From the NCBI GenBank assembly GCA_964036045.1, contig OZ038379.1, positions 3,100,001-3,164,000 of the forward strand: 64,000 bases of DNA, given 5' to 3'. The translations under genes were made by a program, and so were the position numbers. The notes under the pieces were generated by a model. The model was not told the DNA's origin and did no database searches. It worked only from the letters and a program-made list of their open reading frames with translations. Position 1 is the stretch's first letter. Every line of letters starts with the position of its first letter. Source of the stretch: Eutreptiella sp. 'Long Island Sound 2002'. Its lineage: Eukaryota; Protista; Euglenida. This document shows positions 1,166 through 37,477 of the stretch, piece by piece.

Positions 1166-1274
1166 AGAGGAGAGGTACATGGGTCCCAAACGCCGAGGTC
1201 GAGAGCACATATTATTTCTTCACGTGACCGGTGAAGTAGGTGACAGAAAGGGAGCATGGGGCAACAAGGACCAC

Positions 1275-17520: not shown

Positions 17521-17699
17521 TATGCTTGCTCCCACTTGTGCCTGTGCATTGCATAGGAGGCAGGTGTGCACTGTGCGTCTCTTACACATAGGGCACTCTT
17601 TTATTTTAAACCTCCCCCTTGAGGTGAGAAAGTGAGTCTGGGGTCTAGACCGTCGCGTCTCTGACCCACACATTTGAGTTGGGCTTGCCCCAACACCCA

Positions 17700-18030
17700 C
17701 GCGTTCAACTCCCACGCACTGCGGGCCGCCGAGCCGCAGGAGTTGGCCCTCGGTCCCTGGCCACAGCGCCCCGACCAGGGTTGTCGTTCATCCCCCAACC
17801 CACCTACTGCGGGCCGCTGAGCCGCAGGAGTTGGCCCTCGGTCCCGGGCCACAGCGCCCCGACCAGGGTCGTCTTTCATCTCCCAACCCACCTACTGCAG
17901 GTCACCGAGCCGCAGAAGTTGGCCCTTGGTCCCCGGGCACAGCGCCCCGCCCAGGGTCGTCGTTCATCGCCCAACCCACCTACTGCAGGCCACTGAGCCG
18001 CAGAAGTTTGCCCTTGGTCCCCGGCCGCCG
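17700..18030 (+). repeat. 88-bp tandem repeat (~4 units) upstream of the helicase relic
   Basis: CCCAACC anchor at 17794, 17882, 17970 (88-bp period). Confidence 0.9.
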
Positions 18031-18078
18031 CGCCTCGACCTGGAAAACATGCCGAACACCAGCCGCAAAGGCCCTTCG

Positions 18079-18366
18079 CAGGGCAAAGGCCAAGGCCCTC
18101 CGCAGGGCAAAGGCCAAGGCCCTCCGCAAGGCAAAGGCCAAGGCCCTCAGCAGGGCAAAGGCAAAGGCCCTTCGCAAGGCAAAGGCCAAGGCCCTGCGCA
18201 AGGCAAAGGCCAAGCCCCTCCGCAAGGCAAAGGCCAAGGCCCTCCGCAGGGCAAAGGCCAAGCCCCTCCGCAAGGCAAAAGCGGAGGCCCTCCGCAGGGC
18301 AAAGGTCAAGGCCCTCCGCAAGGCAAAGGCGGAGGCCCTCCGCAGGGCAAAGGTCAAGGCCCTCCG
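18079..18366 (+). repeat. 24-bp tandem repeat x12, probably once coding (QGKGQGPP)n
   Basis: 12 units of CAGGGCAAAGGCCAAGGCCCTCCG; CAG/CAA and GGC/GGT variants are synonymous in the QGKG frame. Confidence 0.92.
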
Positions 18367-18389
18367 CCGGCCAAAGACAAGGCCCTTTG

Positions 18390-20820
18390 GTGACACCCTC
18401 TTCCACGTGGACTATGACATCGACACAAACCCAATAGAGGGATTCACCACCTGTTGGGCCGATCGCGACACGTATGTGCAGAAGGCATCCCTTGTGCACA
18501 CTGTCCGTGAGTGTGCCGCCGCTCGGAAGTGGGCATGGGAGCAATATGCCATTAGGAACCTGTGCTTCGAGAAGGCACAGCGGTAGAAGGAGGACAAGAA
18601 TGGCAACATGGTGCTCATAACAGAGTGGGTTGCTGAGATTGAAGTTTGGGGCAACTATGATCTGACCAATGGGCATTTCATCCATGCATGGGACATGGAT
18701 CGGCCACACTTGGGCGACCACATCGCACTGGCACCGGACTTCATTGGCAAGGTGCATGGTGATGGCACCTTTGGCACCATGGTGACCATAGTCTGTTCGA
18801 ACAAACCGCCCATTGTGCAGGAGCACAAGTATTGGTGCTGTGTCCTGCCCGATGAAGCAGCGCTCCGGTCGTTGCGCGACGAGATACGGACGGGGAAGGC
18901 ATGGAACACGTTGCTCAATGCCACTCGGCAAGAACCACATGTGGCTGCCAGCCTCCCTGACGAGGACTAGCAGATCCTACGCCACCTTGTGGCACATCAT
19001 AACTTGAACCCCTCCCAAGCCTTGGCTGTCCGGCAATGTCTGGATGACGGCGCTGTTGTCTCCTCCATGACTTGTGGAGCCGGCACAGGGAAGTTGGATT
19101 GGTGGCTTGCGTCAAGGCAGTGATGTGGCAGCAGGGTCACTTCGACCCATGCATCCCGGATCTGAAGAAGCCAGGTTTCGTACACACCGGCAGGAAAGGG
19201 GGGGGTGGGGGCACTTTTGACGGTTTCCCCCCTCGGGCATGCATCCGAGTCACTGCCCCGACCAATGCACAGGTTGACAACTTGATGCGGCGGGTGATCC
19301 AGTCGGCTGACCAAGATCCTACATTCAAGCAAGAAGTTCTGAAGGATCACTCAGCACCTTGGATGCGGCTATGTGCCGCAAGGGGCTAAACCCCCACAGA
19401 TTTGCTACCCTACAACCAGCCAACAGTGGAAGTGTCGCTTGCTGATCATCCGGCGTGCAATGGCACATTAGCATGTGCCCTCAACAGCTGCCGCGGCATC
19501 CCCACAAAACATGCACTGTGCCCCAAAAGCGGCCAAGTCCAGACCCAATGGGATGCTGTGCCTCGAGGACTCATCCACAACGCTGAATGCAAGCCAAGTT
19601 TGTGGCTTGCCGGGGGGGCCCCCCAAGCAGCAACTTTCGCCTTGTAGCCGCCATCCCTGTTGTCGCAAACACAACCCGGTCAACTGCGCCCATACAGTGC
19701 CATCACTCTTTTGGCAACGCACATCAGTAAAATGACGTCTAACCAACTTGCTTGGCCACAGAAAGAGCACTTTACCAACGTCGATGTGCTTAGCGACGAA
19801 GGAACCCCAATGCAATATGGTGACTCACAGCGCTTCACCACAAGTATTGTGTTGCAGTTTATTCTGTACCGTACAAGGTGTACCGCTTGTGTCCCGACCC
19901 AGCAGTTCCGCATGGCCCCGCCCTTGGCAATGGTGGTGCGTGGACTGTTCACTGGGGAGTCGTTGGGCTGGTACCCCCCTTCCTCCCCTGCACTACCCCC
20001 CCCCCCCCCGTGTTGGGAGGTCAACACATCCGCATCGTCAGCACAGATAATCCGGATGGGAGACGTGAGCTGACACGGTATGGGATGTCAGAGGAGCGGG
20101 TGCAGGTCCTTAGGAACCAGATTATGAGAGCATGAGACTCCCTTGTCATGGACGAGGACATGCGCCGCCAAGGGAACCTGGGCAGGGATGAGGCTTGTGC
20201 TGCACTTTTTGGAGCATGCATACAGTGCAAATGCGTACCCCCCCAACTTAGTGGCAATCGTCACCACACACTATGCACAGATGCTATGGCTGCCGCACTC
20301 TGTGTGGGTTGTGGGGCACAAACTGCAAGGGGATCAGGGATATGAGTGTGTGCAGGTAATCGCCACCCTGGACCGGTACCAGGGTTGGCAGGCCCCTGTT
20401 GTCCTTGCCCCCTTGGTGTCCTCGGAGCCAAGGATCATGAAGGACGTGGTGCGGGCACACACACTAATCTGCAGGGCCCAGTCTTGGCTCCACTTCTTTT
20501 TGGGCCCTTTCTAGGCTAGGATGAGTCCCCCCTGGCTGCTTGTTGGCTGAATGGGTTGAGGGTGATGGCCGACCAACTGCAGCAAGGAGGAACCCAGGAG
20601 GAAGTACAGACGATGCGGCTTCCAGGGGTGATGCACAAGCAACCTACCCTTGCCAAATCAGAGGCGGGTGTAATTTACAAGTTTAAAGGGCCAGGAGGCA
20701 ACGGATACTGGGCTCGCATACGCCGCCGTGTCACAGGCGCATGGTCATCACCACATAGTTCAGTGTTTTTCCTCGCTGCACTGCAGCGCAGACCAGTTCT
20801 GTACCATCCCGCAGCAACCT
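18390..20820 (+). pseudogene. Degenerate intronless SF1B helicase of the UPF1/DNA2/SETX type (AAA_11 + AAA_12)
   Basis: Motifs in order across in-frame stops and frameshifts: LNPSQALAV (Q motif), GAGTGK (Walker A), VTAPTNAQVDNL (Ia), GQLRPY (III), QQFRMAP (IV), VAIVTTHYAQ, ATLDRYQG (V), RAHTLICRAQ (VI). ORFs 17831-18586 and 18608-18970 share a frame; 19072, 19402 and 19660 share a frame. Confidence 0.85.
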
Positions 20821-23070
20821 GAAAATCCAATAAACGTGGCGTACCAAAATGAAACTTTTTGGCAAAAATATGGAACATCCCCCCCTCAAATTGTCGCCTA
20901 ATGCCTTCCCGGGACCCTGAAGGGGGTGCTGCAATAATTTGACAGAAAGTCTTCAGTTTAATTTTGAGATAATGTGTCGACAAGTTTCAGCGCATTCCGT
21001 TGTGAAAGCACAGAGGTCTGACGCCATGCCATACCACACCATGCCAAGCCAAGACCGCCATGCCTTGGCTTGACAAGACGAGGCGAGCGAGCGCGCGCGC
21101 GGGGGCGGAGGGGGGTGCAATGGCAGTGTGGGTGAGTGATGGCAGTGGTCCAAAGTGAAAATTCCAACGGGTAGGGGCAAAGGTGCCACTTTACGAAGGC
21201 ACGCGTACAGCCGAGGCAACTGTCCCGCAGCAACCTGAAAATCCAATAAACGTGGCGTACCAAAATGAAAGTTTTTGCAAAAATATGGAACATCCCCCCT
21301 CTAAATTGTCGCCCAATGCCTTCCCGGGACCCTGAGTGGGGTACTGCAATAATTTGACAGAACGTCTTCATTTTAAGGTTGGGATATTGTGTCGACAAGT
21401 TTGAGCGCATTGCAAGATGAAAGCACCTAGGTCTGACGCCAAGCCATACCATACCATGCCAAGCCAAGACCGCCATGCCTTGGCTTGACAAGACGAGGCG
21501 AGCGAGCGCGCGCGGGGGGGCGGAGGGGCGGAGGGGGGTGCAATGGCAGTGTGGGTGAGTGATGGCAGTGGTCCAAAGTGAAAATTCCAACGGGTAGGGG
21601 CAAAGGTGCCACTTTACGAAGGCACGCGTACAGCCGAGGCAACCATCCTGCAGCAACCTGAAAATCCAATAAACGTGGAGTACCAAAATGAAACTTTCTT
21701 GCAAAAATATGGAACATCCCCCCTCTAAATTGTCGCCTAATGCCCTCCCGGGACCCTGAAGGGGGTGCTGCAATAATTTGACAGAAAGTCATCAGTTTAA
21801 GTTTCAGATAATGTGTCGACAAGTTTCAGCGCATTCCATTGAGAAGGCACAGAGGTCTGACGCCAAGCCATACCACACCATGCCAAGCCAAGACCGCCAT
21901 GCCTTGGCTTGACAAGACGAGGCGAGCGAGCGCGCGCGCGGGGGCGGAGGGGGGTGCAATGGCAGTGTGGGTGAGTGATGGCAGTGGTCCAAAGTGAAAA
22001 TTCCAACGGGTAGGGGCAAAGGTGCCACTTTACGAAGGCACGCGTACAGCCGAGGCAACTGTCCCGCAGCAACCTGAAAATCCAATAAACGTGGCGTACC
22101 AAAATGAAACTTTCTTGCAAAAATATGGAACATCCCCCCCTCAAATTGTCGCCTAATGCCTTCCCGGCACCCTGAAGGCGGTGCCGCAATAAAGTGACAG
22201 AAAGTCATCAATTTAAGTTTCAGATAATGTGTCGACAAGTTTCAGCGCATTCCGTTGTGAAAGCACAGAGGTCTGACGCCAAGCCATACCATACCATGCC
22301 AAGCCAAGACCGCCATGCCTTGGCTTGACGAGATGAGGTGAGCGAGCGCGCGGGGGGGGGCGGAGGGGCGGAGGGGGGTGCAATGGCAGTGTGGGTGAGT
22401 GATGGCAGTGGTCCAAAGTGAAAATTCCAACGGGTAGGGGCAAAGGTGCCACTTTACGAAGGCACGCGTACAGCCGAGGCAACCGTCCCGCAGCAACCTG
22501 AAAATCCAATAAACGTGGCGTACCAAAATGAAACTTTTTGCAAAAATATGGAACATCCCCCCTCTAAATTGTCGCCTAATGCCTTCCCCGGCACCCTGAA
22601 GACGTGCCGCAATAATTTGACAGAACGTCTTCATTTTAAGGTTGAGATATTGTGTCGACAATTTTTAGCGCTTTCCATTATGAAAGCACAGAGGTCTGAC
22701 GCCATGCCATACCACACCATGCCAAGCCAAGACCGCCATGCCTTGGCTTGACGAGATGAGGTGAGCGAGCGCGCGCGCGGGGGCGGAGGGGGGTGCAATG
22801 GCAGTGTGGGTGAGTGATGGCAGTGGTCCAAAGTGAAAATTCCAACGGGTAGGGGCAAAGGTGCCACTTTACGAAGGCACGCGTACAGCCGAGGCAACCG
22901 TCCCGCAGCAACCTGAAAATCCAATAAACGTGGCGTACCAAAATGAAACTTTTTGCAAAAATATGGAACATCCCCCCTCTAAATTGTCGCCTAATGCCTT
23001 CTCGGGACCCTGAATGGGGTACTGCAATAATTTGACAGAAAGTCTTCAGTTTAAGGTTGGGATATTGTGT
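20805..23070. repeat. ~420-bp tandem array, 5 full units plus a partial, alternating short/long units
   Basis: GCAGCAACCTGAAAATCC anchor at 20811, 21227, 21650, 22066, 22490, 22905 (spacings 416, 423, 416, 424, 415). Confidence 0.97.
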
Positions 23071-24929
23071 CTTTAGTAACCACGCGAATCGTTCCCTGTT
23101 GTGGATAACCAAAATTCACAATGAAACGTGCAACTGACCCTTAGGCCCTTCCATCTAGAAGCGCAACTAGCTGTGCACTGTTGTGAGCTGTAGAAGTATT
23201 ATATAGAGTCTCAAAGAGACCTTTCGTTTTGCCTTCAGATACCTCGCAATTTGCTTACCTTAACCTATAAAAGAACATGTGCACTTGAAGTTCATGTCCT
23301 TGCGTTGTTGACCATAGCAGCACATTTCAGGAGCTGAAGCCCACCCGGCTTTTCAAGTCAGGATTGGTCATTGGGCGCTAACGTGCACGAGTGCTGTGTA
23401 CCATGCATACCAGCCATCCCCACATGCACAAGAAAAGATGCCCCAAAAAACAACCAACGTCATGAACAACCCACACACCCCATTCCCACAAGGCACAGCC
23501 CGATTGCGTGACACACCAAAGCCGCAAACACCACCGCTCCACGCACCGTGCCTCCACGCAGAACAATCTCACCCCGGAGGTCCACACATGAAAGCCCAAC
23601 GCACCAGAGGCCTATGCACTACAACCTTACATGCCACAACCCCCCCACCACAATCATGCGGCATTTGATATGTGAGCTATAGCTCATTGTCCATGTTTGG
23701 TTAAAATCCTGCGCAGCAAAAGACCGCAGTCTGGGTCATGGCTTGTGTTGTGGCAAACGTCACCATACATGCAAATGGAAAGGCAAACTCAAAGAGGCAT
23801 CATCCGGGGGGTGTATTGGCTCCATTGCCTCGGTCTGCTTTGCATCAGCGGGGACTGTTTGAGGATAACTGGGTCATTGAAATGCACGGGCAGTGCGGTC
23901 ATGTCACCCGTTTGGGACAATGGGTCATGTATTTGAGGTGGGTGTTGTTCAGCGCATCGCCGGCTGCAGGTCAGCCCCGCCACACAGCGCAAGGAGCCCC
24001 TCAGGGACCCCATCCTGTTTGGAAGCAGGGCCGCTGACCTAACGAGGCCAGCAAACTGGGGGAGGGTCCCTGTTCAAGGCGAGGGATGCTGGTACATTCG
24101 GGTGGGTGGCCCTTCGTCATGGCAGTCGTGCGCCGCCCCCTCCACTGACTAACAAACCGGTCCTGCGGACCACGGGCAGCGCATATAACGTCATCCGGAC
24201 GCATGGCTGAGCTGGACACAACAACGGCGGCCTTTCTACGGGCCCAGACAGACAATTGCCGTGGAAGAGGGAGCTGTGCCCCAGGCGACTGGCACAATCC
24301 ATCCCCACCACTGTCGCACGGTGCAGGTAGTGCATGTCAAATATGTTGACTGAGAATCCGGCATCTCAGCCCTCTACCCATATCCGTGTGATCTTACAGG
24401 CGCTCTCTATGTTTCTCCGTTTCTTGTCACGGGCTTGGGAGGACCGCAGCAAATTTGGGGAGGGTGGGGGTTCAACCGCATAAACACCAGAAGGTCGCAC
24501 GCCGCTGAGGAGCCACCTCCAGTGGCCCACCAATACGGTCCCCAGCAACATGGAGCTGTGCCTTGAGGCAATGGGACTGGTGAGACTGAATTGTGCACTA
24601 ACGGGGGCCAATACAGCAACGCCGGTCCTCAAACGAACCCTCCCCGACACTCTGCAAGAGCACTGCGGCCGTTCATAGGAGAGAAACAGCGGACGGGCCA
24701 CTGCAAAAACGGGATGCCCCATGTTTTTGGGCCTGTCTGAACACATACAAAACAGCACCATTGGGGGAATGTTTGCCCGGCGCGCTACTTTTCTATTTAC
24801 TATCCCGAGTTCAGCCCCAGATTTACCCTCTCCTGGAGAAGCCCCCCAAGTAGACCACATTGCACTGCACACCTTCCCTACAAAACAAGTTGCATAATAA
24901 AGCAATATCTGTGAATTCAGCAACTCCAA

Positions 24930-25480: not shown

Positions 25481-27287
25481 CGGCGGCAGAGAATACCTTC
25501 AGGGGCTTTGGGCAGAGGAGCCTTTGTGCCGCGCACTGCACTGCACTGCACTGCACAACACTGCACTGCGCTCGGATCGTAGGACGCCAGGGAGGGACCG
25601 CAGCACGGGCCTTGGGGGTCATTGCTAGAAACCATCAACTTCTGCCACAGCTGCTACCCACCAATATCAACCCCCCTCCCCCCTCGTGGTGTCACTCTGC
25701 CTGTGACCCATGGGTCATGCAATGCAAGTGGTCCCACACAGCCTCAGCATTCTTCACTCCTGCACTCAGACAGCTCCGAGGCGCAGCAGTCATGATGAAA
25801 ACAGGTCCCTGCAAGACTGGTGCAAAGGAGGTATCACACTCCCTGTTGCCCCCCCGCCCCCCCTCCACCAGAGGAAACCTCTGCTACGTCAGTGCAGAGC
25901 ATACCGCAAAAGAAAAGCTCGGAAGTGACCATACATGACCATACGTACCTTTCAATGGGTACCCCCCTCCCGCGCGCCAATGGCAAAAATGCCTGGAAAC
26001 ACCACACACCACCAATGGGTAACACTGCGCGGTCTGGAACCCCGGCCCCGTGATACATTTCCCACATCACATGTGGGCACTCTCCGTATTTCACTGTCGT
26101 GCGAACGATTCAGTGTGCTACCTTGCCGACGCCGGTGTGGGAGGGACGCCAAGGGGCAGAAGCAGCATTTGTGGGCAGAGGGACAACTCTCACCCACCAA
26201 AGTACTGTTCCCCAGTGGCTTGCAGACAATTCCCTCCTGAAAACTCAAACCAGTGCGTACACCCGGAAGTACCAACCAGCACACCTCCTAAGCCTTTGTG
26301 GCACCGCCCCCCCTCCCCCGCGTGCAGGCCACAGCAACATGTGCACTTGCATGGTGCTTGGCAGTCCTGCAACTTGCTTCGAACTCCTCCAGTCCGATCC
26401 GCCCGTATTGTCTGTTTTCGCCGCTGGGCCGGGAAACAGGACAGGTCTTGACTCGGCTTACACCCCCCGGTCAGATGCATTGGGTCAAGAGGGGGGAGGG
26501 GGGGGTCACTCCTCCCCCCACAGATGCAGAAATTGTGGAGGGAAAGTTTGTGTCAAGCCCACGAATACCTTCCGCCATCAACCAACAGCTGCCATATTAA
26601 GTTGCACAATGGGGGGGGGGGGTTCCAGGACTGTTTCGAAACTGTGGCAAAGCAGCAAAAAGACCGCAGCGGTGGTCACAGCGTAAAAGTGAAAAACGAC
26701 AGACAGACAGCAGCATACCCAACCACCTACACACAGCAGAGGAAACTTTTGGGGTAGAAGGGGCGTTTGGGGGGGGGGGCATTTTGGGGGGTTTAAGGGT
26801 GCAAACGGTCAGGGTGCAATGTCCGCTTGCCAACCCAAAGTCGGAAGGTGCAATAACCTCCCATGATACAAGGAAATCAACGCCGGTTCAGTAGAGTCAC
26901 AGCTGTTTCCTACGGTCTGGGCTTGGTGTGGCTGGAGGCCAACCGGGGGGCGACTTTGGCCAAAAGAGACCAAAACTGTGTGGGAGGCTCGACGCACAGT
27001 TTGCAGCCGGCACGGTGTGTCGAACTCTCCGCCCCCCCAAGGAGAAGGCTGCTTATGACAGAGCGCAAACACGCGTCAGCACATGAAGCAGCGAAGAAGA
27101 GGCTCGTCAGCGGCAACTTAAATACCATCGGCACCTTTCCGCAGCAAAAAAAAAAGACGGGTGTTGAGCTGTTGTGAAGTGGAACTCCCACTTGAAGGGG
27201 AGGGCAGCAGGGAAGTGCCGCAGACGCTGAATGGCCGTGGGTGGGAAAAAAGGTTAGAGGGAGCAGGCGGCGGCGGTTACAAACCGT

Positions 27288-28445
27288 TGCAGCGGCAGTT
27301 GGAGTTGGACGGATGCGGCTGGGGCGTAACTGACTTGCTGTTGGGTGTGGGACCTCCCCGCGCTTCACGCGCAGCCCTGCTGACTGTTAGGGGCCTTTGC
27401 GAGACAAACGTGATCGTGCACCGCCACAACGTGGACCGAGTTGCTTGAGATGTCGGGAGGGATGTATCAGAAGAGAGGAAGGGGGGGGCGGATTTGGCAG
27501 CCAAATGTGTGTGTACCCAAAATGGCCCGACAAGATTTTCCCAATGGTAAATTTCGGTTTTTTCCACTGTGGTCACTTTGGTCGGGGGGGGGGGGGGGTG
27601 AGGTTCCAGGGGGGGGGGGGGGCATTCTAAGATGTCCCTGGACGTCGGGAAATGCCAGTTTCAAGCCAATCAGAAAAAAAAGCCCCGAATGTGCAGAATG
27701 GGCCAGGCCTACTCTCTACATGACCCTGAGCTACGGCTTGGAGTGAATGCTCGGTTCCTTCATGAACTCCTTCATTCGAAGCAGGTCGATGTCGTCGGGC
27801 ATCTGCCCTTTGACCCCGGGCATGGTGAGGGAGGACCAGCCTCTCTCGCGGATCATGCGCAGCCACTGGTTGTACACCACGTCCTTGACCTCGGCACTGG
27901 GCCCCACTTTGTCGTCCAGGGCCTTCAGCACTTGCCGGTTTCTCTGCTCCAAGTGCCTCATGGTGAACTCGTGCACGGCGCGCTCCACGGCGAGCTGCTT
28001 GGCCGACAGCGCGACGGCGGGGGCGACTTTGGGCTTCGTGTCGCGGATGGTCACATCCACCTTGACGTCCTCGGTGGGCTGCTGCTTCGGCACCGTGTGC
28101 TTCGGCGTCTCATGGAACACGAGGCGCCGGGTCATCTGCTTCCAAGCATCTCTTCCATGCTTCGAGGCCATATCCCAGATACAGTGGCTATGGCAAAGGA
28201 ACAAAGAGCGGGGGGGGCTTGCCCGGGCGCCGGGAAAAGCGGTCACAACAGTGCCTGGCGTCGCAGGGTCTCCCCAGAGACTGAAGGCGGCATCAGTCGC
28301 AGTGGGTTGTGTCGCTCGTTTGACATGCACCAACTAGGTTGGCGCCACATGCACACACACCCATGTACGTCCAATCGTCAACTCCAGAAGACATTTCCCC
28401 ATTCAACACATTCAGGCACGTAGATAGGCAGGCACATGCGCATAC
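27288..28445. repeat. Block A (1158 bp), left copy of the direct duplication flanking the retroelement
   Basis: Starts TGCAGCGGCAGTTGG, ends GCACATGCGCATAC; matches 36319-37477; ORF-track translations identical; only difference noticed is one G in a homopolymer. Confidence 0.97.
27731..28150 (-). CDS. Putative host exon or gene fragment of unknown function (left copy)
   Basis: QMTRRLVFHETPKH...MKEFMKEPSIHSKP shows a strong G/C third-position bias (gtc, gcc, aag, ctg) unlike its flanks; helical, charged sequence; boundaries uncertain. Confidence 0.5.
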   Translation of the reverse strand, partial: DAWKQMTRRLVFHETPKHTVPKQQPTEDVKVDVTIRDTKPKVAPAVALSAKQLAVERAVHEFTMRHLEQRNRQVLKALDDKVGPSAEVKDVVYNQWLRMIRERGWSSLTMPGVKGQMPDDIDLLRMKEFMKEPSIHSKP

Positions 28446-28879
28446 GCTGCAAGGGGCGAGCACAAGTACAAAAACTCCTCAGACAAACACGGCCATGCCC
28501 ATGAGGCTAGTGCAAACAAACAATGCAACAGTAGACAGGATGTTCTGGTGGCCCAAAGTCGGGCTGATTGCCCTCGGCACGCAAATACATAATGACAACA
28601 ACGACATTTCATCATCGGTAGGCATCTGTGGTCCCGGGCACACACCATATTCGACCCCTGGCGCCCATGGATCCTGTCCACTCTCGTTTTGTGTGGCACC
28701 AGACCCGCCTTTCGTTTCCATACCAAACTCAACCTGATTTATGTCAAAAATACACTGACTATGCGTTCACACAGGGCCTTACGTCCAGTATATGTGTCGC
28801 TCGCCACAGAGCACTCACACTGGCACCACAAATCAATGGTACTGCACAGCATGCGCAGAAACATCCTGAGATGAAACCA
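28446..28879 (-). repeat. Block B, 3' terminal repeat (pseudo-LTR), 434 bp
   Basis: GCTGCAAGGGGCGAG...GAGATGAAACCA, same as 35885-36318; includes the last 15 codons and stop of ORF2. Confidence 0.96.
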
Positions 28880-31800
28880 CTCCCGAGCCGCTGGTCGCTG
28901 CCGCCCGTTTGCCCTCCCGAACCCACGTGGTAACAGATCCCAGGGAAAACACCTCTAGAAGGTTATACTTCCGCAGAAAGCGTGTGAGACAGGGCAACCA
29001 CCAATGTTTGGGGTAAGAGTGCCAGCCTACGCCCCAGAGGAGGGAGCGAAAATTAGCCTGCACATCTGCAGTGGAACCCGCATACCACAGTGATTTGAGA
29101 AACAGGGACGGCAGCATAGACGCCAGCGTAAAGCTCGCGTTGGCTGAGCGGGCTGGGACCCACCTGAGCCACTCACCCAGCTCAGCGCCCTCAGCGATGT
29201 CCCAGATGACCCCTTTCCTGGTCAAAGAGAAGCCCAGGGGGAGGGGTTTCCATGAACACTCTCCCCAGGACACCCGTAAATCTGTAGGTTCCCATTTCAG
29301 GGGAACTCCATACAAACAGTCCAGGAAATGCTTCGCCGCATGGCGAACGCGAGGGAACAGGGCAGGATGGATGTTCATAAAAATTATGTAGATGTTATCA
29401 CGAAAACGTGAGAAAAGAATGCCTGGGCTGGTGGATATGGGGACAGCCGGGTCGGATGGGCGCGTCGCCCACCCCCACCACCCTCGACGGGCCTCGCTCA
29501 CCACAAAGTCCATGGGATCCAGTTCCCGAAAGAACTCTCGAAGCCGCGCCCTGTCTCGGGGGGGTGCACTCGCAATAACAGTACCCATGCGCCCATCCGG
29601 CGCTCCGTCCCAGAGGGAGGTCACCAGCAGGTCAACCCGCACCCCGTCCACGTCGAGGTACCCGAAGGAGGCATCAGTAGGCCCCCACCACCCTCCGAAC
29701 CCATCAGTACGCAAAGTACTGCTGTGCAAAAAGGGTCGGTCTGTGCTCCCGAGTACCCTGCCCAGTTTCTGTGACCCCCTGCAGGACGGGTGACAAACTT
29801 CGATAGGTTCCCGGACACACAGACGGATATCGGCCAGGGACGCTGGTGCACCCTCCTCACCTTTACGTACTGTCTGATCCCACGTCTTGACAAGACCAGA
29901 CCGGTGCTTACCAAAAATATACTTAAGCTCACGGGCAAGTGCCCAGAGTTCAGCAAGTTGCGCTGACAAATGTCCACCAATCGGGACACCCCGATCGCCT
30001 TGTTTCAGCAATAGCGGGCCCAGCACCAGCCCTGTGTTGTGGTGCAGGTCCCAGGAAACAAAGTCCAGCAATTCCTGCCGGGAGATAACCCTGAAGTCAG
30101 CACTACTCGCTGTACCCAGGCGATCAAGGGCCTTCTCCCCAGACTTATGCAGTGCAAAAAACTCCGCACATCCGCGCCTCTCTCCCTCCAAAAGCTCAAA
30201 CAGTTCATGCAGGGCCGGCACAACATCGCCCTTGGGGATATTCCAGAACATATCCGTCATGTCCGCCTCATCAGGGCGGACACTGGCCCAGACCGGGTTG
30301 AACCTGCCCAAGGACCCCAGTAAATCACGTACTCCTACCATACTCGGCATGCCCAATGTCTGGAACTGCCGGTACACTTCGCTGACAATGAGCTGTAGTG
30401 ATCTGCTCATGAGGCGTGCATACGAGCGCAGGATGTGGAGCTTAAAGGACACAATATCGCGCCATTTAACAATGGCCTGTGCCCCACGTTCAACCGTCTT
30501 CCATTTCAAAATGGAAAAAATCGAGGGCGCACCAAAAAGTGGCCGCTGATGCTGGCGTTGGGGGCCTGGGTCTAAATCTACAGTGTCTCCAGGGGAAGGT
30601 GGAGGTTCCGGGTCGGTATAGACCGAATTAATGTGAGTTGCAGCCCAAGAAAGATCTGCATACCCTTTACGCAGGAGATTGTGATGAATCGCACAGTCCA
30701 CAATCCCATGTGCTTGGGCAGAGGTCAGTGTATCATACACATTCGCTGCTTGGGCAGCAGCTTTGGACTCTGCCACGCCCCACAAAATAAAGCGGTCCCC
30801 TCCCAAGTAGGATCCCACCACATGGTCCTCTTCCAACACCCTGCATGCACCGGACATCCTGTGGAGCTGTTTGTCCCAAATCCCTGCGCGAAAGCGAAGG
30901 TCCCAGATGCGTTTAGAGAGCCCGGAAACATGCTCGCTGCCCAATGTGGGGCACTCCAGTGTATACGCAGAGATGTCCGCAAGACAAAAATTATGCACCC
31001 ATTCAACAATAGGTGCTATATCGTCTCCGGAAAGCAAGGAACTCGCTGACACAGGCGGGTATAGCGCAGAGGAAGAGGACGCAGGGGTCGTGGGGAGCGA
31101 GGGAGGGATTTGGGAGAGGGAGAGAGAGGCAGAAGCCAGAGAGGGAGAGATGCCAGACGCGGAGGGAAGAAAACCCTCTGCGGGTACAGTCATGCGTTGC
31201 AGGGACGTCTGGAACAGCTCCATCTGAGCTGCCAGCACATCTATGGAAGGAATGACGCACTGACGCGCATTGCTGCTGAGGGTATCAGCCCCTTCGTCAC
31301 TGAAAAGACACGCCCATTGTGATCTAGTGCGCAGGACAACATGTCCCAGATCGTTCCGTAGGGCAGGATGCTGTCGCATCAATGCAGCACATGTGCATCG
31401 TCGCCCTTGCCTTCGCGCGAGCTGTCGTTGTATCTCTTGCACTACACGCGGCTGAACTTCAGAGGGTTCTTTGAAGACCCATGCTCGCTGCTGCCCCCCC
31501 ACAAGGAAAGGCGACGCGTCGTAGGTTCCAAGTTTAATACCAGAGACCAGCTCGTCTGCAGTCATGCGAACAGTACGTAAGGCAGCCCCTCCCCTGAATA
31601 CATCTTTAAGTTTATGGGCTTGCAAAGGTAGAACAGACAATGCACGGGAAAGCCATGCCTTGAGGGTTTGCGGTACATCATGCTGCGCAATCTGTGACCT
31701 GAGGCTCCTCTTAATGCCATTGATGGTATGCCTGTGGTAGGTAGGAACCCGTACGATAAAACGACGTTGCAATTCAACACCCCACGTGCGTTTCACTACA

Positions 31801-33824
31801 CCCTGGACTGCGCGAAAGAAGGAATCAAACAGGCGGCCTGGGATTTTCCCCAATGAAGAGGTTAGTAGATCAAGCAGATCCTCTACTCCCTGGTCGGTAT
31901 CCTTACTGCTCCTCACTTTCCAGAGTACATCGTTCACACGCTGGGACAGTGTTTTGGCTTCAGATGAAGTCTCCTCCCGCAGGCTCCACCGCCACCGCAG
32001 TTCGCCTATCCCCCACCCTCTCGCTGGGTCAATTTGATTCAGGGTGGGGGCCAGTACACTGTCAAAGTGCGACTCGACATTAAACGCTTCTCGTGGCGGG
32101 TCCACCTTCTGCAGCAGTACCATCGAGGCTTGGTGACCCCCCACTCTGGCTAGCACTCTAGACAGGGAGGGTGTTTTTCCAAACCCCAACTGACATCTCA
32201 TTCGTCTGTGTCTGTTGCCCAGGAACAGGTTCCTGAGTGATTTGGCTCTGGACAGATGTTCCTTATAGCGCTCCAGAGGTGCCCTCGGACCCTGCAGAAA
32301 ACCAACTTGACCTACATACGGCAGGAAGGCTCCCACCATAACATAGATCCATGTGTCTTCTATCGTCAGTGGTGTATCCAAGGGGAGGCGTGACAGGCGC
32401 ACAGCTCGTCTCAGTCGGGCATCAGGGCAGTCCTTGAGCAGCTGGTTGCTGCGCATAAGAGACTCCGCAACCATGTCCCATTTCACACATCGGGATTTTA
32501 GAAGTTGTGCACGCACATCGGCTTCTTCATCCCAGGCCGCCCAGAATTCTGAAAGCAAGGCCAGTTGCTCTTCCCTGGTAGGAAAGGGTGAATCTGAACC
32601 CACCAGACCCGGTAGAGGCCCGTACCATGCTCCTGAGCCTGTGGACTTAATGATGTTCTTCACAGCCACACCAAACCTCCTGGCATCCACACCGCACCCT
32701 ACTTCTGCCGTACCTCCATCTATCAACCACCATTCCCATATACCCTTCTGCCAGTACCAGACTTCTTGGCCTGTTGCGCTCTGGTCGAACGCACGAACCT
32801 TTAATCTGGATTGTGCACCGAATTGTACAGCACGGCCGTCATTGGCCCATTTTTCTAAAACACCATTCCATCCACGATTGTGTTCCCTGTTATGTAAAAC
32901 GCACAGTCGAAAATTCGGATCGTGTAGGCGATCCTCCACCTTTGCAGAGAATTCAAAGGGTGCAACATCGGATCTCAGGAAAAACTTCCTCGTCGAGTCG
33001 GACATTGCAAAAACATTATCTAGAACACCGTCAAAGTATAGACACTCCGGAATATCCGTTGCATACATCGGCAGGCCTGCAGACCAGGGGCTCCCAAATA
33101 GCATGCAGTTGATTCCCAGAACGTCACGCAGAAAATCTTCTGCTCCGCCTGTCAATCTACATCCTAAGCCTCGTCTACTATGCATAATTTCCACAAGGAT
33201 AATGGCGTATTCGCAAAACTGCTGGACTTCAGCCGGCGTCACTTCAGACCATGTCCTCACTCCATTGGTCGCCGCATAGCCGTCCCATAGAGGTCGCAGG
33301 GATCTGTTCCTGGCCAAGACGCTGGCAAATGTATCAACAGTAGCGCATTCTTGTAGAAACCGCAAAATGGGAAGACATACACTCTTCTGACCCGCAAACA
33401 GATTTTCTGATTGAGTAGAGGACATATCGGCTCTATCACTATCTTCCGATGGATCCACACTCCGTTGCGTCGAAGAAGAGGAAGAGGAGAGTGGGGAGAA
33501 TGGGTCAGAGTCCAGAGTAGCGTTGCTCTGTAACCCTGCCTCTAAGCAAACAGCCTCTGATGGTGCCTGGGGATCTGCTCGTCCACTGTGATTGTCGCTC
33601 ATGTAGGCAATACAGGTCCCAGGAGCCATCGGAGGTTCGTCGATCTCAGTAGTAGGCATTTCTAGTATTCGCTGATCGTCACAAATAGTGGAGCGCAGAA
33701 AGGTAGCGGCTTGCTCCAGGTCATTGATAGCTCGCGCCCTCTCCAAATCTTCTCGTGCGTGTTGTAGAAGAAGTTCACGCAGTGTCGGAGAGAGCACAGA
33801 AAACGAAGTCCCTGTACTCGTCAT
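28833..33824 (-). CDS. ORF2 polyprotein, 1663 aa: putative MTase-like domain, GIY-YIG endonuclease, reverse transcriptase
   Basis: GIY-YIG: WIY-x8-YVG, ERYKEH, VESHF, PTLN (aa ~492-596). CTC...GHVV linker. RT: DMTDMFWNIP (D1188), GVPIGGHLSAQLA (aa 1279), RFRDN (D1476). No stops over 5 kb. Confidence 0.93.
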   Translation of the reverse strand: MTSTGTSFSVLSPTLRELLLQHAREDLERARAINDLEQAATFLRSTICDDQRILEMPTTEIDEPPMAPGTCIAYMSDNHSGRADPQAPSEAVCLEAGLQSNATLDSDPFSPLSSSSSSTQRSVDPSEDSDRADMSSTQSENLFAGQKSVCLPILRFLQECATVDTFASVLARNRSLRPLWDGYAATNGVRTWSEVTPAEVQQFCEYAIILVEIMHSRRGLGCRLTGGAEDFLRDVLGINCMLFGSPWSAGLPMYATDIPECLYFDGVLDNVFAMSDSTRKFFLRSDVAPFEFSAKVEDRLHDPNFRLCVLHNREHNRGWNGVLEKWANDGRAVQFGAQSRLKVRAFDQSATGQEVWYWQKGIWEWWLIDGGTAEVGCGVDARRFGVAVKNIIKSTGSGAWYGPLPGLVGSDSPFPTREEQLALLSEFWAAWDEEADVRAQLLKSRCVKWDMVAESLMRSNQLLKDCPDARLRRAVRLSRLPLDTPLTIEDTWIYVMVGAFLPYVGQVGFLQGPRAPLERYKEHLSRAKSLRNLFLGNRHRRMRCQLGFGKTPSLSRVLARVGGHQASMVLLQKVDPPREAFNVESHFDSVLAPTLNQIDPARGWGIGELRWRWSLREETSSEAKTLSQRVNDVLWKVRSSKDTDQGVEDLLDLLTSSLGKIPGRLFDSFFRAVQGVVKRTWGVELQRRFIVRVPTYHRHTINGIKRSLRSQIAQHDVPQTLKAWLSRALSVLPLQAHKLKDVFRGGAALRTVRMTADELVSGIKLGTYDASPFLVGGQQRAWVFKEPSEVQPRVVQEIQRQLARRQGRRCTCAALMRQHPALRNDLGHVVLRTRSQWACLFSDEGADTLSSNARQCVIPSIDVLAAQMELFQTSLQRMTVPAEGFLPSASGISPSLASASLSLSQIPPSLPTTPASSSSALYPPVSASSLLSGDDIAPIVEWVHNFCLADISAYTLECPTLGSEHVSGLSKRIWDLRFRAGIWDKQLHRMSGACRVLEEDHVVGSYLGGDRFILWGVAESKAAAQAANVYDTLTSAQAHGIVDCAIHHNLLRKGYADLSWAATHINSVYTDPEPPPSPGDTVDLDPGPQRQHQRPLFGAPSIFSILKWKTVERGAQAIVKWRDIVSFKLHILRSYARLMSRSLQLIVSEVYRQFQTLGMPSMVGVRDLLGSLGRFNPVWASVRPDEADMTDMFWNIPKGDVVPALHELFELLEGERRGCAEFFALHKSGEKALDRLGTASSADFRVISRQELLDFVSWDLHHNTGLVLGPLLLKQGDRGVPIGGHLSAQLAELWALARELKYIFGKHRSGLVKTWDQTVRKGEEGAPASLADIRLCVREPIEVCHPSCRGSQKLGRVLGSTDRPFLHSSTLRTDGFGGWWGPTDASFGYLDVDGVRVDLLVTSLWDGAPDGRMGTVIASAPPRDRARLREFFRELDPMDFVVSEARRGWWGWATRPSDPAVPISTSPGILFSRFRDNIYIIFMNIHPALFPRVRHAAKHFLDCLYGVPLKWEPTDLRVSWGECSWKPLPLGFSLTRKGVIWDIAEGAELGEWLRWVPARSANASFTLASMLPSLFLKSLWYAGSTADVQANFRSLLWGVGWHSYPKHWWLPCLTRFLRKYNLLEVFSLGSVTTWVREGKRAAATSGSGVVSSQDVSAHAVQYH

Positions 33825-35764
33825 GGTGCTGCAGTCCCAGAGGTAGAAGCAGTTCCATCAGTGAGGCAAGGGCGTTTCAGAGGTTTACCCGCGTTCAACT
33901 CGTCCGCTGCTACGTGTGCAGCTTCTTCCCAAAAGAAGACCTTGTCGAAGGTGTTCATTTCCCACGTGTCAAAAGGGCATGCCTCAGCACTCTCCAGAGC
34001 CGGTTCCAGCGGGTTCTGGATGGTCACAGCGCTGGAAGGTCCCAGTACCAAGTGCCCCGCAGGTCGCAGTCCAACAGACCTCACTGTGACGACCTGGTGA
34101 GTCCTCTCTGGGGGTCCATCCGACACTGCAGCAGGCCCCGGCGCTAGGACCACCATATGCAGTCCCTGACCAGTATGGCTAAGGGCGTGCACTCCTTCGT
34201 TCCTCCTCTTAATTGCGGGCGGCGTCAGCAAAGAACCCCTGCATTGCAGGAGCGCCGCCATATCGACCATTTTCCACTCCTGTGCAGGACGCCACCCAAG
34301 CTGCCATTCCCTCAGCTCATTCGCTTTAGGGGTAGCGCCCTGATTTTCTGTCGCAGTCGGAGCGTCCGAGTGGTCCATCATCGTCAAGTCTTCAGAAAAG
34401 GCGGACACTCGGTTGTCATCCGATGAGTTGGAAATAGAAATGCGTCCTGAATGTAGAGGCATGTCAGCGCCCATAGTAAGCAGACTCTCAGCCGTGGGTG
34501 CTGCAGGTCCCGACTTGGTGTCCTCGAGGGTCGCAAGCCGCATCTTCTCCTCGATCTGGGGATCGAGACTCGGGGGCAGCTCAGCCAGGGCCGCTTCTTT
34601 TGCCTGCTGCATCAGGGCATTCACCTCGTCCGGGGAGACACCGCCGACCTTGACCAGAAGTGTGCCCATCAAACTCTGGGAGACACTGGTGGAGCGCTTC
34701 AGATCCGTCACAGACTGATCGATACGGCCCAGCTGCTGCCAAATGTGTTTGCGGTCCTCGGTCAGGGTTTTTAACGACTCTTCAGCATCCTGCACTCGGG
34801 CGTTCAGGGCGTGCGCGGGAAGGCCGACGATAGCGGGCTGCATTCTCGAGCTGGGCGGTGTTTTCGCTAGCGATAGGCTCGGAGTGGAGGTCGACGGGTT
34901 CAGGGCGATCTGAAAGGAGTTGTTCGGTCCGTTCAGTGCAGTGGCCACCAGATCTGTAGCAGGGTCACCCGCGCGATCCCGTTTGCCCCGTTTCGGTTTC
35001 AACTTCTTCTTCCCCTTCCCCTTCGAGGACGAGACGTCACGGGGCTGAAAAGCAAAACCCTGTGCCTGACCAGCAGTGCCTGGTGGTGCAGGCAACGCCA
35101 GCACATTCGAGTCGTTCACTGGTGGCGCACTCGCTGGTAGCAGTGAATGCTGAAAGAACTCAGCAGTAGGCGCGTCCTTCACAGGTTGCGGGGGTGTGGT
35201 CTTCGGATCGGTTCCGTCGTCCCATCGCGGAAGCCCAGTGGCTGCCTCCATCACTGCAGCCAGGAACTCTCGATCCGACATCCGGGGCCACCTGGAAGTA
35301 TCCACCTCCAAATTCTCAGCGATCTGGTACCGGGTGTAGCGCTTCTCCCGTACATCACGCAGAATTTTGTGCCAATAATCACGGTTCGAGGTCCAGCGAT
35401 CAGAGTCAGCCTGGCACCATCTGTGATTCGTTGGAAAATGAACGCCTGAAAGATGTCCAAACTTCTTACAGAGATAGCACGGATTTCCCATTTTGTGTTC
35501 GGCCTTACCCAGCGCTTCAGAGTTGCTGTGGTCCACTTGTTTGAGGTCAAACCGCGGCAAGACGTCGTCAGTGTGGGACCCACCTTGGCGAGGTTCTTTA
35601 GTCGGAGAGGATCGCGGAGGAGAACGTCGCTGTTTCCGACTCCCATTTCCTTTCCTCTGTTTTTGCTGCACTTGTTGCCCGTCAGCCATTAGAGAGCGCA
35701 CTGCATGCGCAGTAGCATCGCCAATGAGCTTGGCCATTTTATCGGATGGAACGAAGGAAGACAT
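33821..35764 (-). CDS. ORF1, gag-like protein with CX2CX4HX4H knuckle and coiled coil (first ATG 35764; frame open to 35830)
   Basis: CYLCKKFGHLSGVH; basic N-terminal stretch (KQRKGNGSRKQRR); heptad-like RVQDAEESLKTLTEDRKHIWQQLGRIDQSVTDL; stop overlaps the ORF2 start (ATGA). Confidence 0.85.
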   Translation of the reverse strand: MSSFVPSDKMAKLIGDATAHAVRSLMADGQQVQQKQRKGNGSRKQRRSPPRSSPTKEPRQGGSHTDDVLPRFDLKQVDHSNSEALGKAEHKMGNPCYLCKKFGHLSGVHFPTNHRWCQADSDRWTSNRDYWHKILRDVREKRYTRYQIAENLEVDTSRWPRMSDREFLAAVMEAATGLPRWDDGTDPKTTPPQPVKDAPTAEFFQHSLLPASAPPVNDSNVLALPAPPGTAGQAQGFAFQPRDVSSSKGKGKKKLKPKRGKRDRAGDPATDLVATALNGPNNSFQIALNPSTSTPSLSLAKTPPSSRMQPAIVGLPAHALNARVQDAEESLKTLTEDRKHIWQQLGRIDQSVTDLKRSTSVSQSLMGTLLVKVGGVSPDEVNALMQQAKEAALAELPPSLDPQIEEKMRLATLEDTKSGPAAPTAESLLTMGADMPLHSGRISISNSSDDNRVSAFSEDLTMMDHSDAPTATENQGATPKANELREWQLGWRPAQEWKMVDMAALLQCRGSLLTPPAIKRRNEGVHALSHTGQGLHMVVLAPGPAAVSDGPPERTHQVVTVRSVGLRPAGHLVLGPSSAVTIQNPLEPALESAEACPFDTWEMNTFDKVFFWEEAAHVAADELNAGKPLKRPCLTDGTASTSGTAAP

Positions 35765-35884
35765 CGAAGGAGCTTGAACGATATCGAGGTAATACCGCGA
35801 ATGTCGAAAGTGAACTTGTACTTGAATCAACGGAGGACAATGGAAGGTACACGCGTTTCAGTCGCACGCGTGTTAGAGCCACAG

Positions 35885-36318
35885 GCTGCAAGGGGCGAGC
35901 ACAAGTACAAAAACTCCTCAGACAAACACGGCCATGCCCATGAGGCTAGTGCAAACAAACAATGCAACAGTAGACAGGATGTTCTGGTGGCCCAAAGTCG
36001 GGCTGATTGCCCTCGGCACGCAAATACATAATGACAACAACGACATTTCATCATCGGTAGGCATCTGTGGTCCCGGGCACACACCATATTCGACCCCTGG
36101 CGCCCATGGATCCTGTCCACTCTCGTTTTGTGTGGCACCAGACCCGCCTTTCGTTTCCATACCAAACTCAACCTGATTTATGTCAAAAATACACTGACTA
36201 TGCGTTCACACAGGGCCTTACGTCCAGTATATGTGTCGCTCGCCACAGAGCACTCACACTGGCACCACAAATCAATGGTACTGCACAGCATGCGCAGAAA
36301 CATCCTGAGATGAAACCA
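35885..36318 (-). repeat. Block B', 5' terminal repeat (pseudo-LTR), 434 bp
   Basis: Same sequence as 28446-28879; abuts block A' directly. Confidence 0.96.
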
Positions 36319-37477
36319 TGCAGCGGCAGTTGGAGTTGGACGGATGCGGCTGGGGCGTAACTGACTTGCTGTTGGGTGTGGGACCTCCCCGCGCTTCACG
36401 CGCAGCCCTGCTGACTGTTAGGGGCCTTTGCGAGACAAACGTGATCGTGCACCGCCACAACGTGGACCGAGTTGCTTGAGATGTCGGGAGGGATGTATCA
36501 GAAGAGAGGAAGGGGGGGGCGGATTTGGCAGCCAAATGTGTGTGTACCCAAAATGGCCCGACAAGATTTTCCCAATGGTAAATTTCGGTTTTTTCCACTG
36601 TGGTCACTTTGGTCGGGGGGGGGGGGGGGGTGAGGTTCCAGGGGGGGGGGGGGGCATTCTAAGATGTCCCTGGACGTCGGGAAATGCCAGTTTCAAGCCA
36701 ATCAGAAAAAAAAGCCCCGAATGTGCAGAATGGGCCAGGCCTACTCTCTACATGACCCTGAGCTACGGCTTGGAGTGAATGCTCGGTTCCTTCATGAACT
36801 CCTTCATTCGAAGCAGGTCGATGTCGTCGGGCATCTGCCCTTTGACCCCGGGCATGGTGAGGGAGGACCAGCCTCTCTCGCGGATCATGCGCAGCCACTG
36901 GTTGTACACCACGTCCTTGACCTCGGCACTGGGCCCCACTTTGTCGTCCAGGGCCTTCAGCACTTGCCGGTTTCTCTGCTCCAAGTGCCTCATGGTGAAC
37001 TCGTGCACGGCGCGCTCCACGGCGAGCTGCTTGGCCGACAGCGCGACGGCGGGGGCGACTTTGGGCTTCGTGTCGCGGATGGTCACATCCACCTTGACGT
37101 CCTCGGTGGGCTGCTGCTTCGGCACCGTGTGCTTCGGCGTCTCATGGAACACGAGGCGCCGGGTCATCTGCTTCCAAGCATCTCTTCCATGCTTCGAGGC
37201 CATATCCCAGATACAGTGGCTATGGCAAAGGAACAAAGAGCGGGGGGGGCTTGCCCGGGCGCCGGGAAAAGCGGTCACAACAGTGCCTGGCGTCGCAGGG
37301 TCTCCCCAGAGACTGAAGGCGGCATCAGTCGCAGTGGGTTGTGTCGCTCGTTTGACATGCACCAACTAGGTTGGCGCCACATGCACACACACCCATGTAC
37401 GTCCAATCGTCAACTCCAGAAGACATTTCCCCATTCAACACATTCAGGCACGTAGATAGGCAGGCACATGCGCATAC
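36319..37477. repeat. Block A' (1159 bp), right copy of the flanking duplication
   Basis: Matches 27288-28445; continues without a break into the CAGACAGG-rich tract at 37478+. Confidence 0.97.
36763..37182 (-). CDS. Second copy of the putative host exon
   Basis: Translation identical to the 27731-28333 ORF. Confidence 0.5.
   Translation of the reverse strand, partial: DAWKQMTRRLVFHETPKHTVPKQQPTEDVKVDVTIRDTKPKVAPAVALSAKQLAVERAVHEFTMRHLEQRNRQVLKALDDKVGPSAEVKDVVYNQWLRMIRERGWSSLTMPGVKGQMPDDIDLLRMKEFMKEPSIHSKP

Follow-up and report, generated by a model that had tools for sequence, protein, structure and literature searches.

A 64,000-nucleotide stretch of the genome of the euglenid Eutreptiella sp. 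'Long Island Sound 2002' (assembly GCA_964036045.1, contig OZ038379.1, positions 3,100,001 to 3,164,000; hereafter the window) carries on its minus strand a 7.87-kb retroelement. Its large second open reading frame (ORF2) carries on its N-terminal side a methyltransferase-like domain that lacks the catalytic motif of its closest structural relatives. Translation of positions 28833-33824 (minus strand) gives an intact ORF2 of 1663 uninterrupted amino acids. A first-pass annotation of this DNA, made from the letters alone, had flagged positions 33140-32715 of the minus strand (ORF2 aa 229-370) as a candidate N6-adenine methyltransferase-like domain of the PCIF1/CAPAM or Dam type, fused in front of an endonuclease. 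The residues that it quoted are indeed found in this segment, which includes MLFGSPWS (aa 241-248) and KFFLRSDVAPF (aa 280-290). According to structure prediction, the flagged segment forms the core of a domain with the class I methyltransferase fold of the PCIF1/CAPAM type. The whole domain is wider than the span first flagged, with about 245 residues (ORF2 aa ~150-394, positions 32643-33377, minus strand).

Relatives of ORF2 aa 140-430 were collected by an exhaustive phmmer search against 1.84 billion representatives (E ≤ 1e-3), which returned 29 proteins, mostly short fragments of gene models; their alignment is referred to as A1. In four of them (P0003, P0007, P0015 and P0024), the methyltransferase-like domain runs on into a 'YVGQ' block, as it does in the window. 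The AlphaFold2 model of the domain, computed from A1 without templates, is confident (pLDDT 87.1, pTM 0.84) and has strands at model residues 101-103, 114-117, 141-145, 167-173, 193-207 and 215-230. The features of the class I fold are found in this model and in the Foldseek lists, namely an alpha/beta sheet, the hairpin of strands 6 and 7 and matches to solved methyltransferases. In the PDB, ranks 1-6 are occupied by PCIF1/CAPAM chains (6irv, 6irw, 6irx, 6irz, 6is0 and 6iry; E 4.5e-6 to 4.9e-4, probability 1.00, TMq 0.43-0.55 over about 235 aligned columns), and these six are the only matches at E ≤ 1e-3. The best methyltransferase outside the PCIF1 family reaches E 1.2e-3, with TM-scores of 0.25-0.34. 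In the BFVD library, giant-virus PCIF1 proteins come first, headed by that of Pithovirus LCPAC101 (E 1.7e-7, TMq 0.55) and followed by those of Bodo saltans virus, CroV, Hokovirus and Tetraselmis virus 1. Seven of the ten BFVD matches at E ≤ 1e-3 are named PCIF1, the remaining three being unnamed or uncharacterised, and phage Dam-like N6-adenine methyltransferases match weakly (E 3.6e-3 and worse). The first-pass annotation had named the lack of any Rossmann-like class I methyltransferase match or fold as the result that would tell against it; the model has such a fold, and its closest structures are specifically those of PCIF1/CAPAM. The helices around strand 3 are predicted to be short, or absent and replaced by coil, and degenerate helices at this place are a hallmark of the M.EcoKI/M.TaqI/PCIF1 group (Iyer, Zhang and Aravind; PMC4738411).

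The best structural matches in both libraries are PCIF1/CAPAM (PF12237; PDB 6IRV-6IS0), the enzyme that writes cap-adjacent m6Am, and its giant-virus counterparts. Besides the class I fold and the degenerate helices, the domain shares with them helices that precede the core, a loop with F-x-S-P behind strand 1 and an extended hairpin formed by strands 6 and 7. Unlike PCIF1, it has no PF12237 match and no WW domain detectable by Pfam anywhere in ORF2, and it is embedded in a retroelement polyprotein. Its helical part is also much smaller, with only about 70 residues before the core, than the helical domain that forms the cap groove of PCIF1. Finally, the position of motif IV, occupied by NPPF in PCIF1, reads F-x-R-[ST]-D followed by variable residues.

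Neither the (N/D)PP(F/Y/W) catalytic loop nor the more general (D/N/S)-P-P-(Y/F/W/H) form of motif IV occurs anywhere in the family alignment of about 27 relatives. The first-pass annotation had taken VAPF for the counterpart of NPPF and had asked whether NPP(F/Y/W) is kept in homologous elements; VAPF turned out to be present only in the closest relatives, and no aligned sequence has N/D-PP-F/Y/W. The segment in question (aa 280-290, positions 32955-32987, minus strand) comprises strand 4, modelled at aa 280-284, and the loop at the motif IV position. It conserves F282, R284 and D286, the last in 18 of 26 sequences, while V287-A288-P289-F290 is variable, with L-Y-T-T, L-W-E-P, L-C-C-V, G-L-S-K, I-S-P-S and others in its place in other lineages. 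For comparison, we assembled seven viral PCIF1 proteins from giant-virus contigs with a short degenerate motif search, an earlier motif pattern for PCIF1 relatives having given chance matches only. Five of the seven were confirmed as PF12237 by Pfam (E 1e-36 to 8.6e-13). These proteins are only 22-28% identical to one another, a depth similar to that of the retroelement family, and E-C-F-A-S-P and N-P-P are invariant among them. In PCIF1, changing NPPF to APPA or SPPG abolishes activity (bioRxiv 10.1101/485862).

What the family does conserve is concentrated on Arg, Trp and Glu positions around the canonical cleft. Besides F282, R284 and D286, the conserved columns of A1 are R174, L179, W180, W192, F203, L224, T225, G226, G227, E229, L232, L236, P246 and C261 on the N-terminal side, and R313, W319, G330, R331, R344, G352, E354, W356, G361, W363, E364 and G371 on the C-terminal side. 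P246, kept in 19 of 21 sequences, belongs to the motif-I-like loop M-L-F-G-S-P-W-S (positions 33081-33104, minus strand), which lies over ECFASP(F/L)N of PF12237 proteins in an alignment that is itself non-significant. The three best-conserved blocks, RLTGGxE, FxR[ST]D and LxxRxY...GxExW, are spaced by about 59 and 57 residues, which is similar to the spacing of the human PCIF1 loops termed active-site, catalytic and substrate-binding (P494, N553 and P612). Judged by strand position and spacing, the three blocks could correspond to the three loops of the PCIF1 substrate pocket, and D286 would then stand at the position of N553. The first block, C-R-L-T-G-G-x-E-x-F-L (aa 222-237, positions 33114-33161, minus strand), is likely the counterpart of the PCIF1 active-site loop, its equivalence to the human loop being deduced from spacing. 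The alignment by eye with human PCIF1 was checked only against the published residue numbers N553, E558, W588, P591/592, P612 and Y618.

Several results weigh against this interpretation. The proposed homology with PCIF1 is drawn from predicted structure, and no sequence method links the domain to PCIF1. Pfam gives nothing for ORF2 or for the excised domain segment, and phmmer and profile searches of the PDB find no match for the domain. None of the 29 relatives matches PF12237 at E ≤ 0.1, and none shows a reverse transcriptase (RT), recombinase or PCIF1 domain in Pfam. When the retroelement family was compared with the seven viral PCIF1 proteins by hhalign, the E-value was 0.2 for the full alignments and 0.12 for the cores. 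The best hhalign register is the structural one, with F-G-S-P-W-S over E-C-F-A-S-P-L-N and R-L-T-G-G-x-E over the viral 'FWGLxP' block; the parallel with the PCIF1 core pattern that the first-pass annotation had drawn is reproduced in register but not in significance. Moreover, only strand position and spacing connect D286 with N553 and the conserved blocks with the PCIF1 loops. Lastly, the conserved Asp immediately behind strand 4, with a frequent aromatic residue or Pro two to four positions further on, could still support catalysis; four lineages have D-L-W-E-P there.

Purifying selection acts on the methyltransferase-like domain. When the window copy is compared with a 63-68%-identical subfamily on contig L001, synonymous sites are saturated, and the nonsynonymous divergence (dN) is 0.27 for the domain (0.21 for the flagged span), 0.245 for the RT and 0.07 for the nuclease block. 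The element also exists in multiple copies and has been active recently. At 90% identity, the window ORF2 belongs to a cluster of 34 members, and three full-length versions of 1663 aa, 2-5 aa apart, are found on different contigs of the ENA assembly ERZ25074135. A second subfamily has members with ORF2 of 1627 and 1637 aa, in which the domain is intact. A word-indexed protein search retrieved only the same element and one subfamily, and a search of JGI metagenome contigs with another alignment, A3, yielded no relative. Transcripts of the organism of ERZ25074135 also occur in the MMETSP-type JGI sets 3300017334 and 3300017366. The only joined sequence used in this work is the natural overlap of two stretches from one contig.

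A distant relative is L005, a 7.3-kb transcript contig from an MMETSP-type data set, which has the same layout at only 23-29% identity. It comprises, in this order, an ORF1 with the same zinc knuckle, the ATGA overlap, the methyltransferase-like domain, the linker and YVGQ block, RRCKCARLMRQHP and the RT. Because the layout persists at this distance, we consider the domain to be an old, retained module of the element family. Its placement in front of the endonuclease, as first proposed, also stands: in the window it precedes a block with GIY-YIG-type motifs and the RT, the 29%-identical L005 keeps this order, and the domain precedes the GIY-YIG-like block in every 5'-complete relative.

We favour, with modest confidence, the explanation that the domain is a non-catalytic module that binds an RNA 5' end or cap and keeps the ORF2 protein (ORF2p) on its own RNA. 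The preference for a non-catalytic binding module comes from the combination of a fold that is kept, a catalytic tetrapeptide that is gone and conserved Arg, Trp and Glu positions in the cleft. PCIF1 itself holds the m7G cap and the first transcribed nucleotide with its methyltransferase and helical domains. The domain of ORF2 would bind nucleic acid, and any catalysis by it would at most be non-canonical; most probably, it would grip the RNA of the element itself, at its capped 5' end or elsewhere. ORF2p would thereby be held on its template during target-primed reverse transcription, and likewise during the template jump that would rebuild the pseudo-long terminal repeat (pseudo-LTR). The first-pass annotation had left two options, an enzyme that marks or protects the element's own cDNA or RNA and a catalytically dead module that binds nucleic acid or S-adenosylmethionine (SAM). 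The dead binding module is the one favoured here, because N/D-PP-F/Y/W is absent across the family, and the self-marking enzyme is disfavoured.

Precedents for such a conversion exist among cellular proteins. METTL14 is a pseudo-methyltransferase, in which the methyltransferase fold has been kept under selection after loss of the catalytic tetrapeptide and serves binding. Drosophila Pcif1 is catalytically dead, and methyltransferase-independent roles of PCIF1 have been documented (PMC9916840). The domain of ORF2 resembles both in having kept the fold and lost the tetrapeptide, and it is predicted to resemble them in its use for binding. However, METTL14 and Drosophila Pcif1 are cellular proteins that stand beside, or in place of, an active paralogue, whereas the domain described here is part of the polyprotein of a mobile element.

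A precedent among retroelements is provided by DIRS. The MT domain of DIRS1 belongs to the PCIF1 clade, has substitutions at catalytic and substrate residues and was judged 'likely inactive'; binding of the template transcript or mimicry of PCIF1 were proposed as its roles (PMC4738411). The first-pass annotation had noted that DIRS elements carry Dam-like methyltransferases; the presence of a methyltransferase in these elements is borne out, but its assignment is to the PCIF1 clade instead of Dam, and as an inactive member (PMC4738411). The DIRS1 domain and ours are thus alike in being retroelement-borne, of PCIF1 type and devoid of the catalytic motif, and the role that we propose would be of the same kind as that suggested for DIRS1.

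The alternative that best survives, although we consider it unlikely, is a SAM-dependent methyltransferase that is active with a motif IV of non-canonical form and would mark or protect the RNA of the element, at a cap-adjacent or internal adenosine, or its cDNA. The PCIF1-type fold on which such an enzyme would be built is confidently predicted, yet the N/D-PP-aromatic motif is missing from all lineages, whereas true PCIF1 proteins of equal divergence keep N-P-P, and mutation of the N and F of NPPF kills PCIF1 (bioRxiv 10.1101/485862). The acidic D286 at the end of strand 4 is conserved in 18 of 26 sequences; the other eight, among them the transcribed L005 lineage, have Y, H, Q, T or G in its place. 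P246 is kept in the motif-I-like loop. No conserved acidic residue, the usual ribose ligand, is found at the end of strand 2, where the alignment is poor. The location of the conserved blocks at the canonical cleft and a purifying selection as strong as that on the RT would suit an enzyme. In a bolder version of the same idea, which we regard as quite doubtful, F-x-R-[ST]-D would replace NPPF as a catalytic loop of a new type, and the functional methyltransferase would mark the capped RNA or nascent cDNA of the element. Such a retrotransposon would mark itself and would stand at the base of a separate, deep branch of Penelope-like elements (PLEs) in marine protists.

It is improbable that the domain acts instead as a PCIF1 mimic through protein contacts, docking ORF2p on the transcription or capping machinery or displacing the PCIF1 of the host. 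Of the two roles suggested for the DIRS1 domain, such mimicry is one (PMC4738411), and the methyltransferase-independent roles of PCIF1 (PMC9916840) give it some plausibility. However, PCIF1 contacts RNA polymerase II via its WW domain, none is detectable in ORF2 by Pfam, and the N-terminus of ORF2 consists of a helix followed by a low-complexity stretch. In addition, the conserved positions are rich in Arg and Trp and are located at the substrate cleft, as would rather be expected of a nucleotide-binding domain. Least probable is a generic Rossmann-fold similarity or modelling artefact in a family-specific domain unrelated to methyltransferases: although every sequence and profile comparison is non-significant and the structural agreement is moderate (TM-scores 0.43-0.55, RMSD 4-7 A), the PCIF1 family comes first in two independent libraries and leads other methyltransferases by two to three orders of magnitude in E-value and about twofold in TM-score, with a model made without templates and a best hhalign register that coincides with the structural one.

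The limits of the element, positions 28446-36318 of the window (minus strand), follow from the comparison of three copies with unrelated flanks. One of the other two (L011) has in common with the window only positions 36315-28446, and the second (L010), which is 5'-truncated, positions 35050-28446; all three end at the identical 3' base. The element is bounded by two direct pseudo-LTRs of 434 bp, which are 100% identical in self-BLAST. The upstream one occupies positions 35885-36318 and the downstream one positions 28446-28879, starting about 41-44 nt before the ORF2 stop codon (both minus strand); L011 has this repeat pair too. ORF1 is gag-like and extends from a first ATG at 35764 down to 33821 (minus strand), within an open frame of 669 codons (33821-35830). 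It has no Pfam match, but contains a zinc-knuckle-like CX2CX4HX4H at positions 35453-35485, in a region conserved in the ORF1 of L005. The stop codon of ORF1 and the start codon of ORF2 overlap as ATGA, both in the window (33821-33824) and in the 29%-identical L005 (2220-2223), which suggests a conserved coupling of the two frames by termination and reinitiation.

Downstream of the methyltransferase-like domain, a conserved helical linker (FWxxWD ... RLRRxxRL; positions 32379-32549, minus strand; alignments A2 and A3) leads to a putative nuclease block at aa 492-597 (positions 32034-32351, minus strand). This block has IYV, YVGQ, R/H, E and N at GIY-YIG-type spacing, conserved in five lineages, and is devoid of CCHH. 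It matches nothing in Pfam or the PDB, as a single sequence or as a profile, and its assignment as a GIY-YIG endonuclease is one that we infer from these motifs. A CxC motif follows (R-R-C-T-C-A-A-L-M-R-Q-H-P, aa 808-820, positions 31365-31403, minus strand), which is conserved in L005 and P0001: the versions read RRCTCAAL in the window, RRCKCARL in L005 and LCRCSSL in P0001.

The RT-like polymerase covers aa ~1107-1569 (positions 29118-30506, minus strand; alignment A4) and has recognizable motifs A (DMxDMFW), B (GVPIGGxLSAQ) and C (RxxDNxY; aa 1471-1482, positions 29379-29414). The DD normally found in motif C is DN in all five lineages of A4, and motifs B and C are set apart by an insertion of about 180 aa in which WWxP and WDxxxxGR blocks are conserved. 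Neither single sequences nor profiles of the RT region match Pfam or PDB sequences. Its AlphaFold2 model is weak as a whole (pLDDT 57.5) and better in the palm core (78-90); with this model, Foldseek retrieves telomerase reverse transcriptases (TERTs) first (E 8e-4 to 5e-2) and then the RTs of group II introns. The catalytic activities of the putative endonuclease and RT are likewise predicted from these features.

This organization sets the element apart from DIRS. In DIRS elements, the MT domain comes after the RT and RNase H, a tyrosine recombinase is present and the terminal repeats are inverted or split as A1-B1-A2-B2 (PMC4157794). Our element has its methyltransferase-like domain at the N-terminus of ORF2, ahead of GIY-YIG-type motifs and a TERT-like RT; its pseudo-LTRs are plain direct repeats, and 5'-truncated copies exist. 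A Pfam scan of the element gave no signal of RNase H or a tyrosine recombinase. Unlike the LTR-type RT of DIRS, the RT model matches TERTs and not retroviral or Ty3 RTs, with the caveat that this is the model with a pLDDT of 57.5.

The element has much in common with the Naiad and Chlamys PLEs, which have an N-terminal endonuclease and of which the CxC motif is diagnostic (Craig et al., 2021; PMC8557442). Their order of endonuclease, CxC and RT is also that of the putative endonuclease, CxC motif and putative RT of our element; the Chlamys endonuclease is likewise without CCHH, and Chlamys-2_cBra also has an upstream gag-like ORF with a zinc knuckle (PMC8557442). Pseudo-LTRs, 5' truncation, inverted partial copies and the lack of a hammerhead ribozyme are further common traits; in our element, no such ribozyme was detected even at E ≤ 1. 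However, Naiad RTs retrieve canonical PLE RTs by BLAST (PMC8557442), whereas the RT described here matches neither RVT_1 of Pfam nor any PDB profile, and it differs from those of Naiad and Chlamys by DN in place of DD in motif C and by the roughly 180 aa between motifs B and C. A methyltransferase is not mentioned by Craig et al. (2021; PMC8557442), and our literature searches found no PLE with one. A Penelope-like label is thus plausible for the element, its endonuclease and RT being assigned from motifs and a weak fold match; membership is short of proof because both enzymatic domains lie beyond profile detection.

The insertion in the window is bracketed exactly by a 1165-bp direct duplication of flanking host DNA, whose copies, at positions 27281-28445 and 36313-37477, are 99.7% identical (self-BLAST) and lie outside the element as judged by copy comparison. 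This duplication is absent from the flanks of L010 and L011. Its junction with the 5' end of the element has an AAACC microhomology, and its outer left edge is marked by a (GGC)n run (~27265-27275). It could be either an exceptionally long target-site duplication or the sign that the element inserted where the two units of an older tandem duplication met. We also considered reading the A-B...B-A repeats of the window as the split direct repeats of DIRS/PAT elements and rejected this, since split repeats run A1-B1-A2-B2 (PMC4157794) and the 'A' is host flank by copy comparison.

Elsewhere in the window, a satellite array with a register of about 41 bp and copies 80-88% alike extends over positions 1275-2220 and 5659-15231 (~10.5 kb). 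Positions 20803-23071 contain 5-6 tandem copies, 93-95% identical, of a repeat unit about 420 bp long. Two ORFs of 202 aa, neither with a Pfam match, lie on opposite strands (50851-51459, minus; 55485-56093, plus), close to short DNA matches of 88-90% identity between 52166-52705 and 54232-55348; the pair may represent an inverted duplication. The other long ORFs of the window have no Pfam domain, no tRNA or Rfam gene was found within it, and a search for the dinoflagellate spliced leader was negative.

The contigs that carry relatives of the element offer some observations on its surroundings. In L002 (746-4609) and L008 (7814-11677), a 5' half (aa ~310-824) and a 3' half (aa ~821-1649) of an ORF2 relative are arranged head-to-head on opposite strands; this arrangement, seen in a genome contig and in a transcript contig, resembles the inverted partial copies of PLEs. 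In L001, a long interspersed nuclear element (LINE; 13626-21612) with a 1589-aa ORF containing APE and RVT_1 splits a copy of ORF2 at about aa 1195. An AlkB-like 2OG-Fe(II) oxygenase domain (Pfam E 1.8e-7) forms the end of the upstream 951-aa ORF of this LINE, and a demethylase-type domain as the ORF1 partner of a LINE is worth noting beside the methyltransferase-like domain of the other element. In L011, another copy of the element is preceded, 8 kb upstream, by an ORF with a Ty1/copia-type RT (RVT_2; 1-1902, minus strand), and L004 ends with a DDE_Tnp_1_7 transposase; mobile elements of other kinds abound in the host genome.

Retroelements with a PCIF1-like domain have been described before: the methyltransferase of DIRS elements was already assigned to the PCIF1 clade and is probably inactive (PMC4738411). 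In contrast, within the literature that we searched, a PCIF1-like domain has no precedent at the N-terminus of an element that combines GIY-YIG-type motifs with a TERT-like RT. With an intact and recently active copy and a domain of about 245 aa for which a confident model exists, this element offers a tractable case, in which R284, D286, R313, W319, R344, E354, W356, W363 and E364 are conserved positions open to mutation. The family has probably been left unannotated in protist genomes, because its divergence hides it from the standard RT and endonuclease profiles, and its recognition would widen the known domain repertoire and host range of PLEs. Two unrelated orders of retroelements, DIRS and a family with GIY-YIG-type motifs and a telomerase-like RT, would each carry a PCIF1-clade fold without its catalytic motif. 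Such repeated capture, followed by retention under selection, argues that retroelements profit from this fold, most plausibly by holding the template RNA at its capped 5' end.

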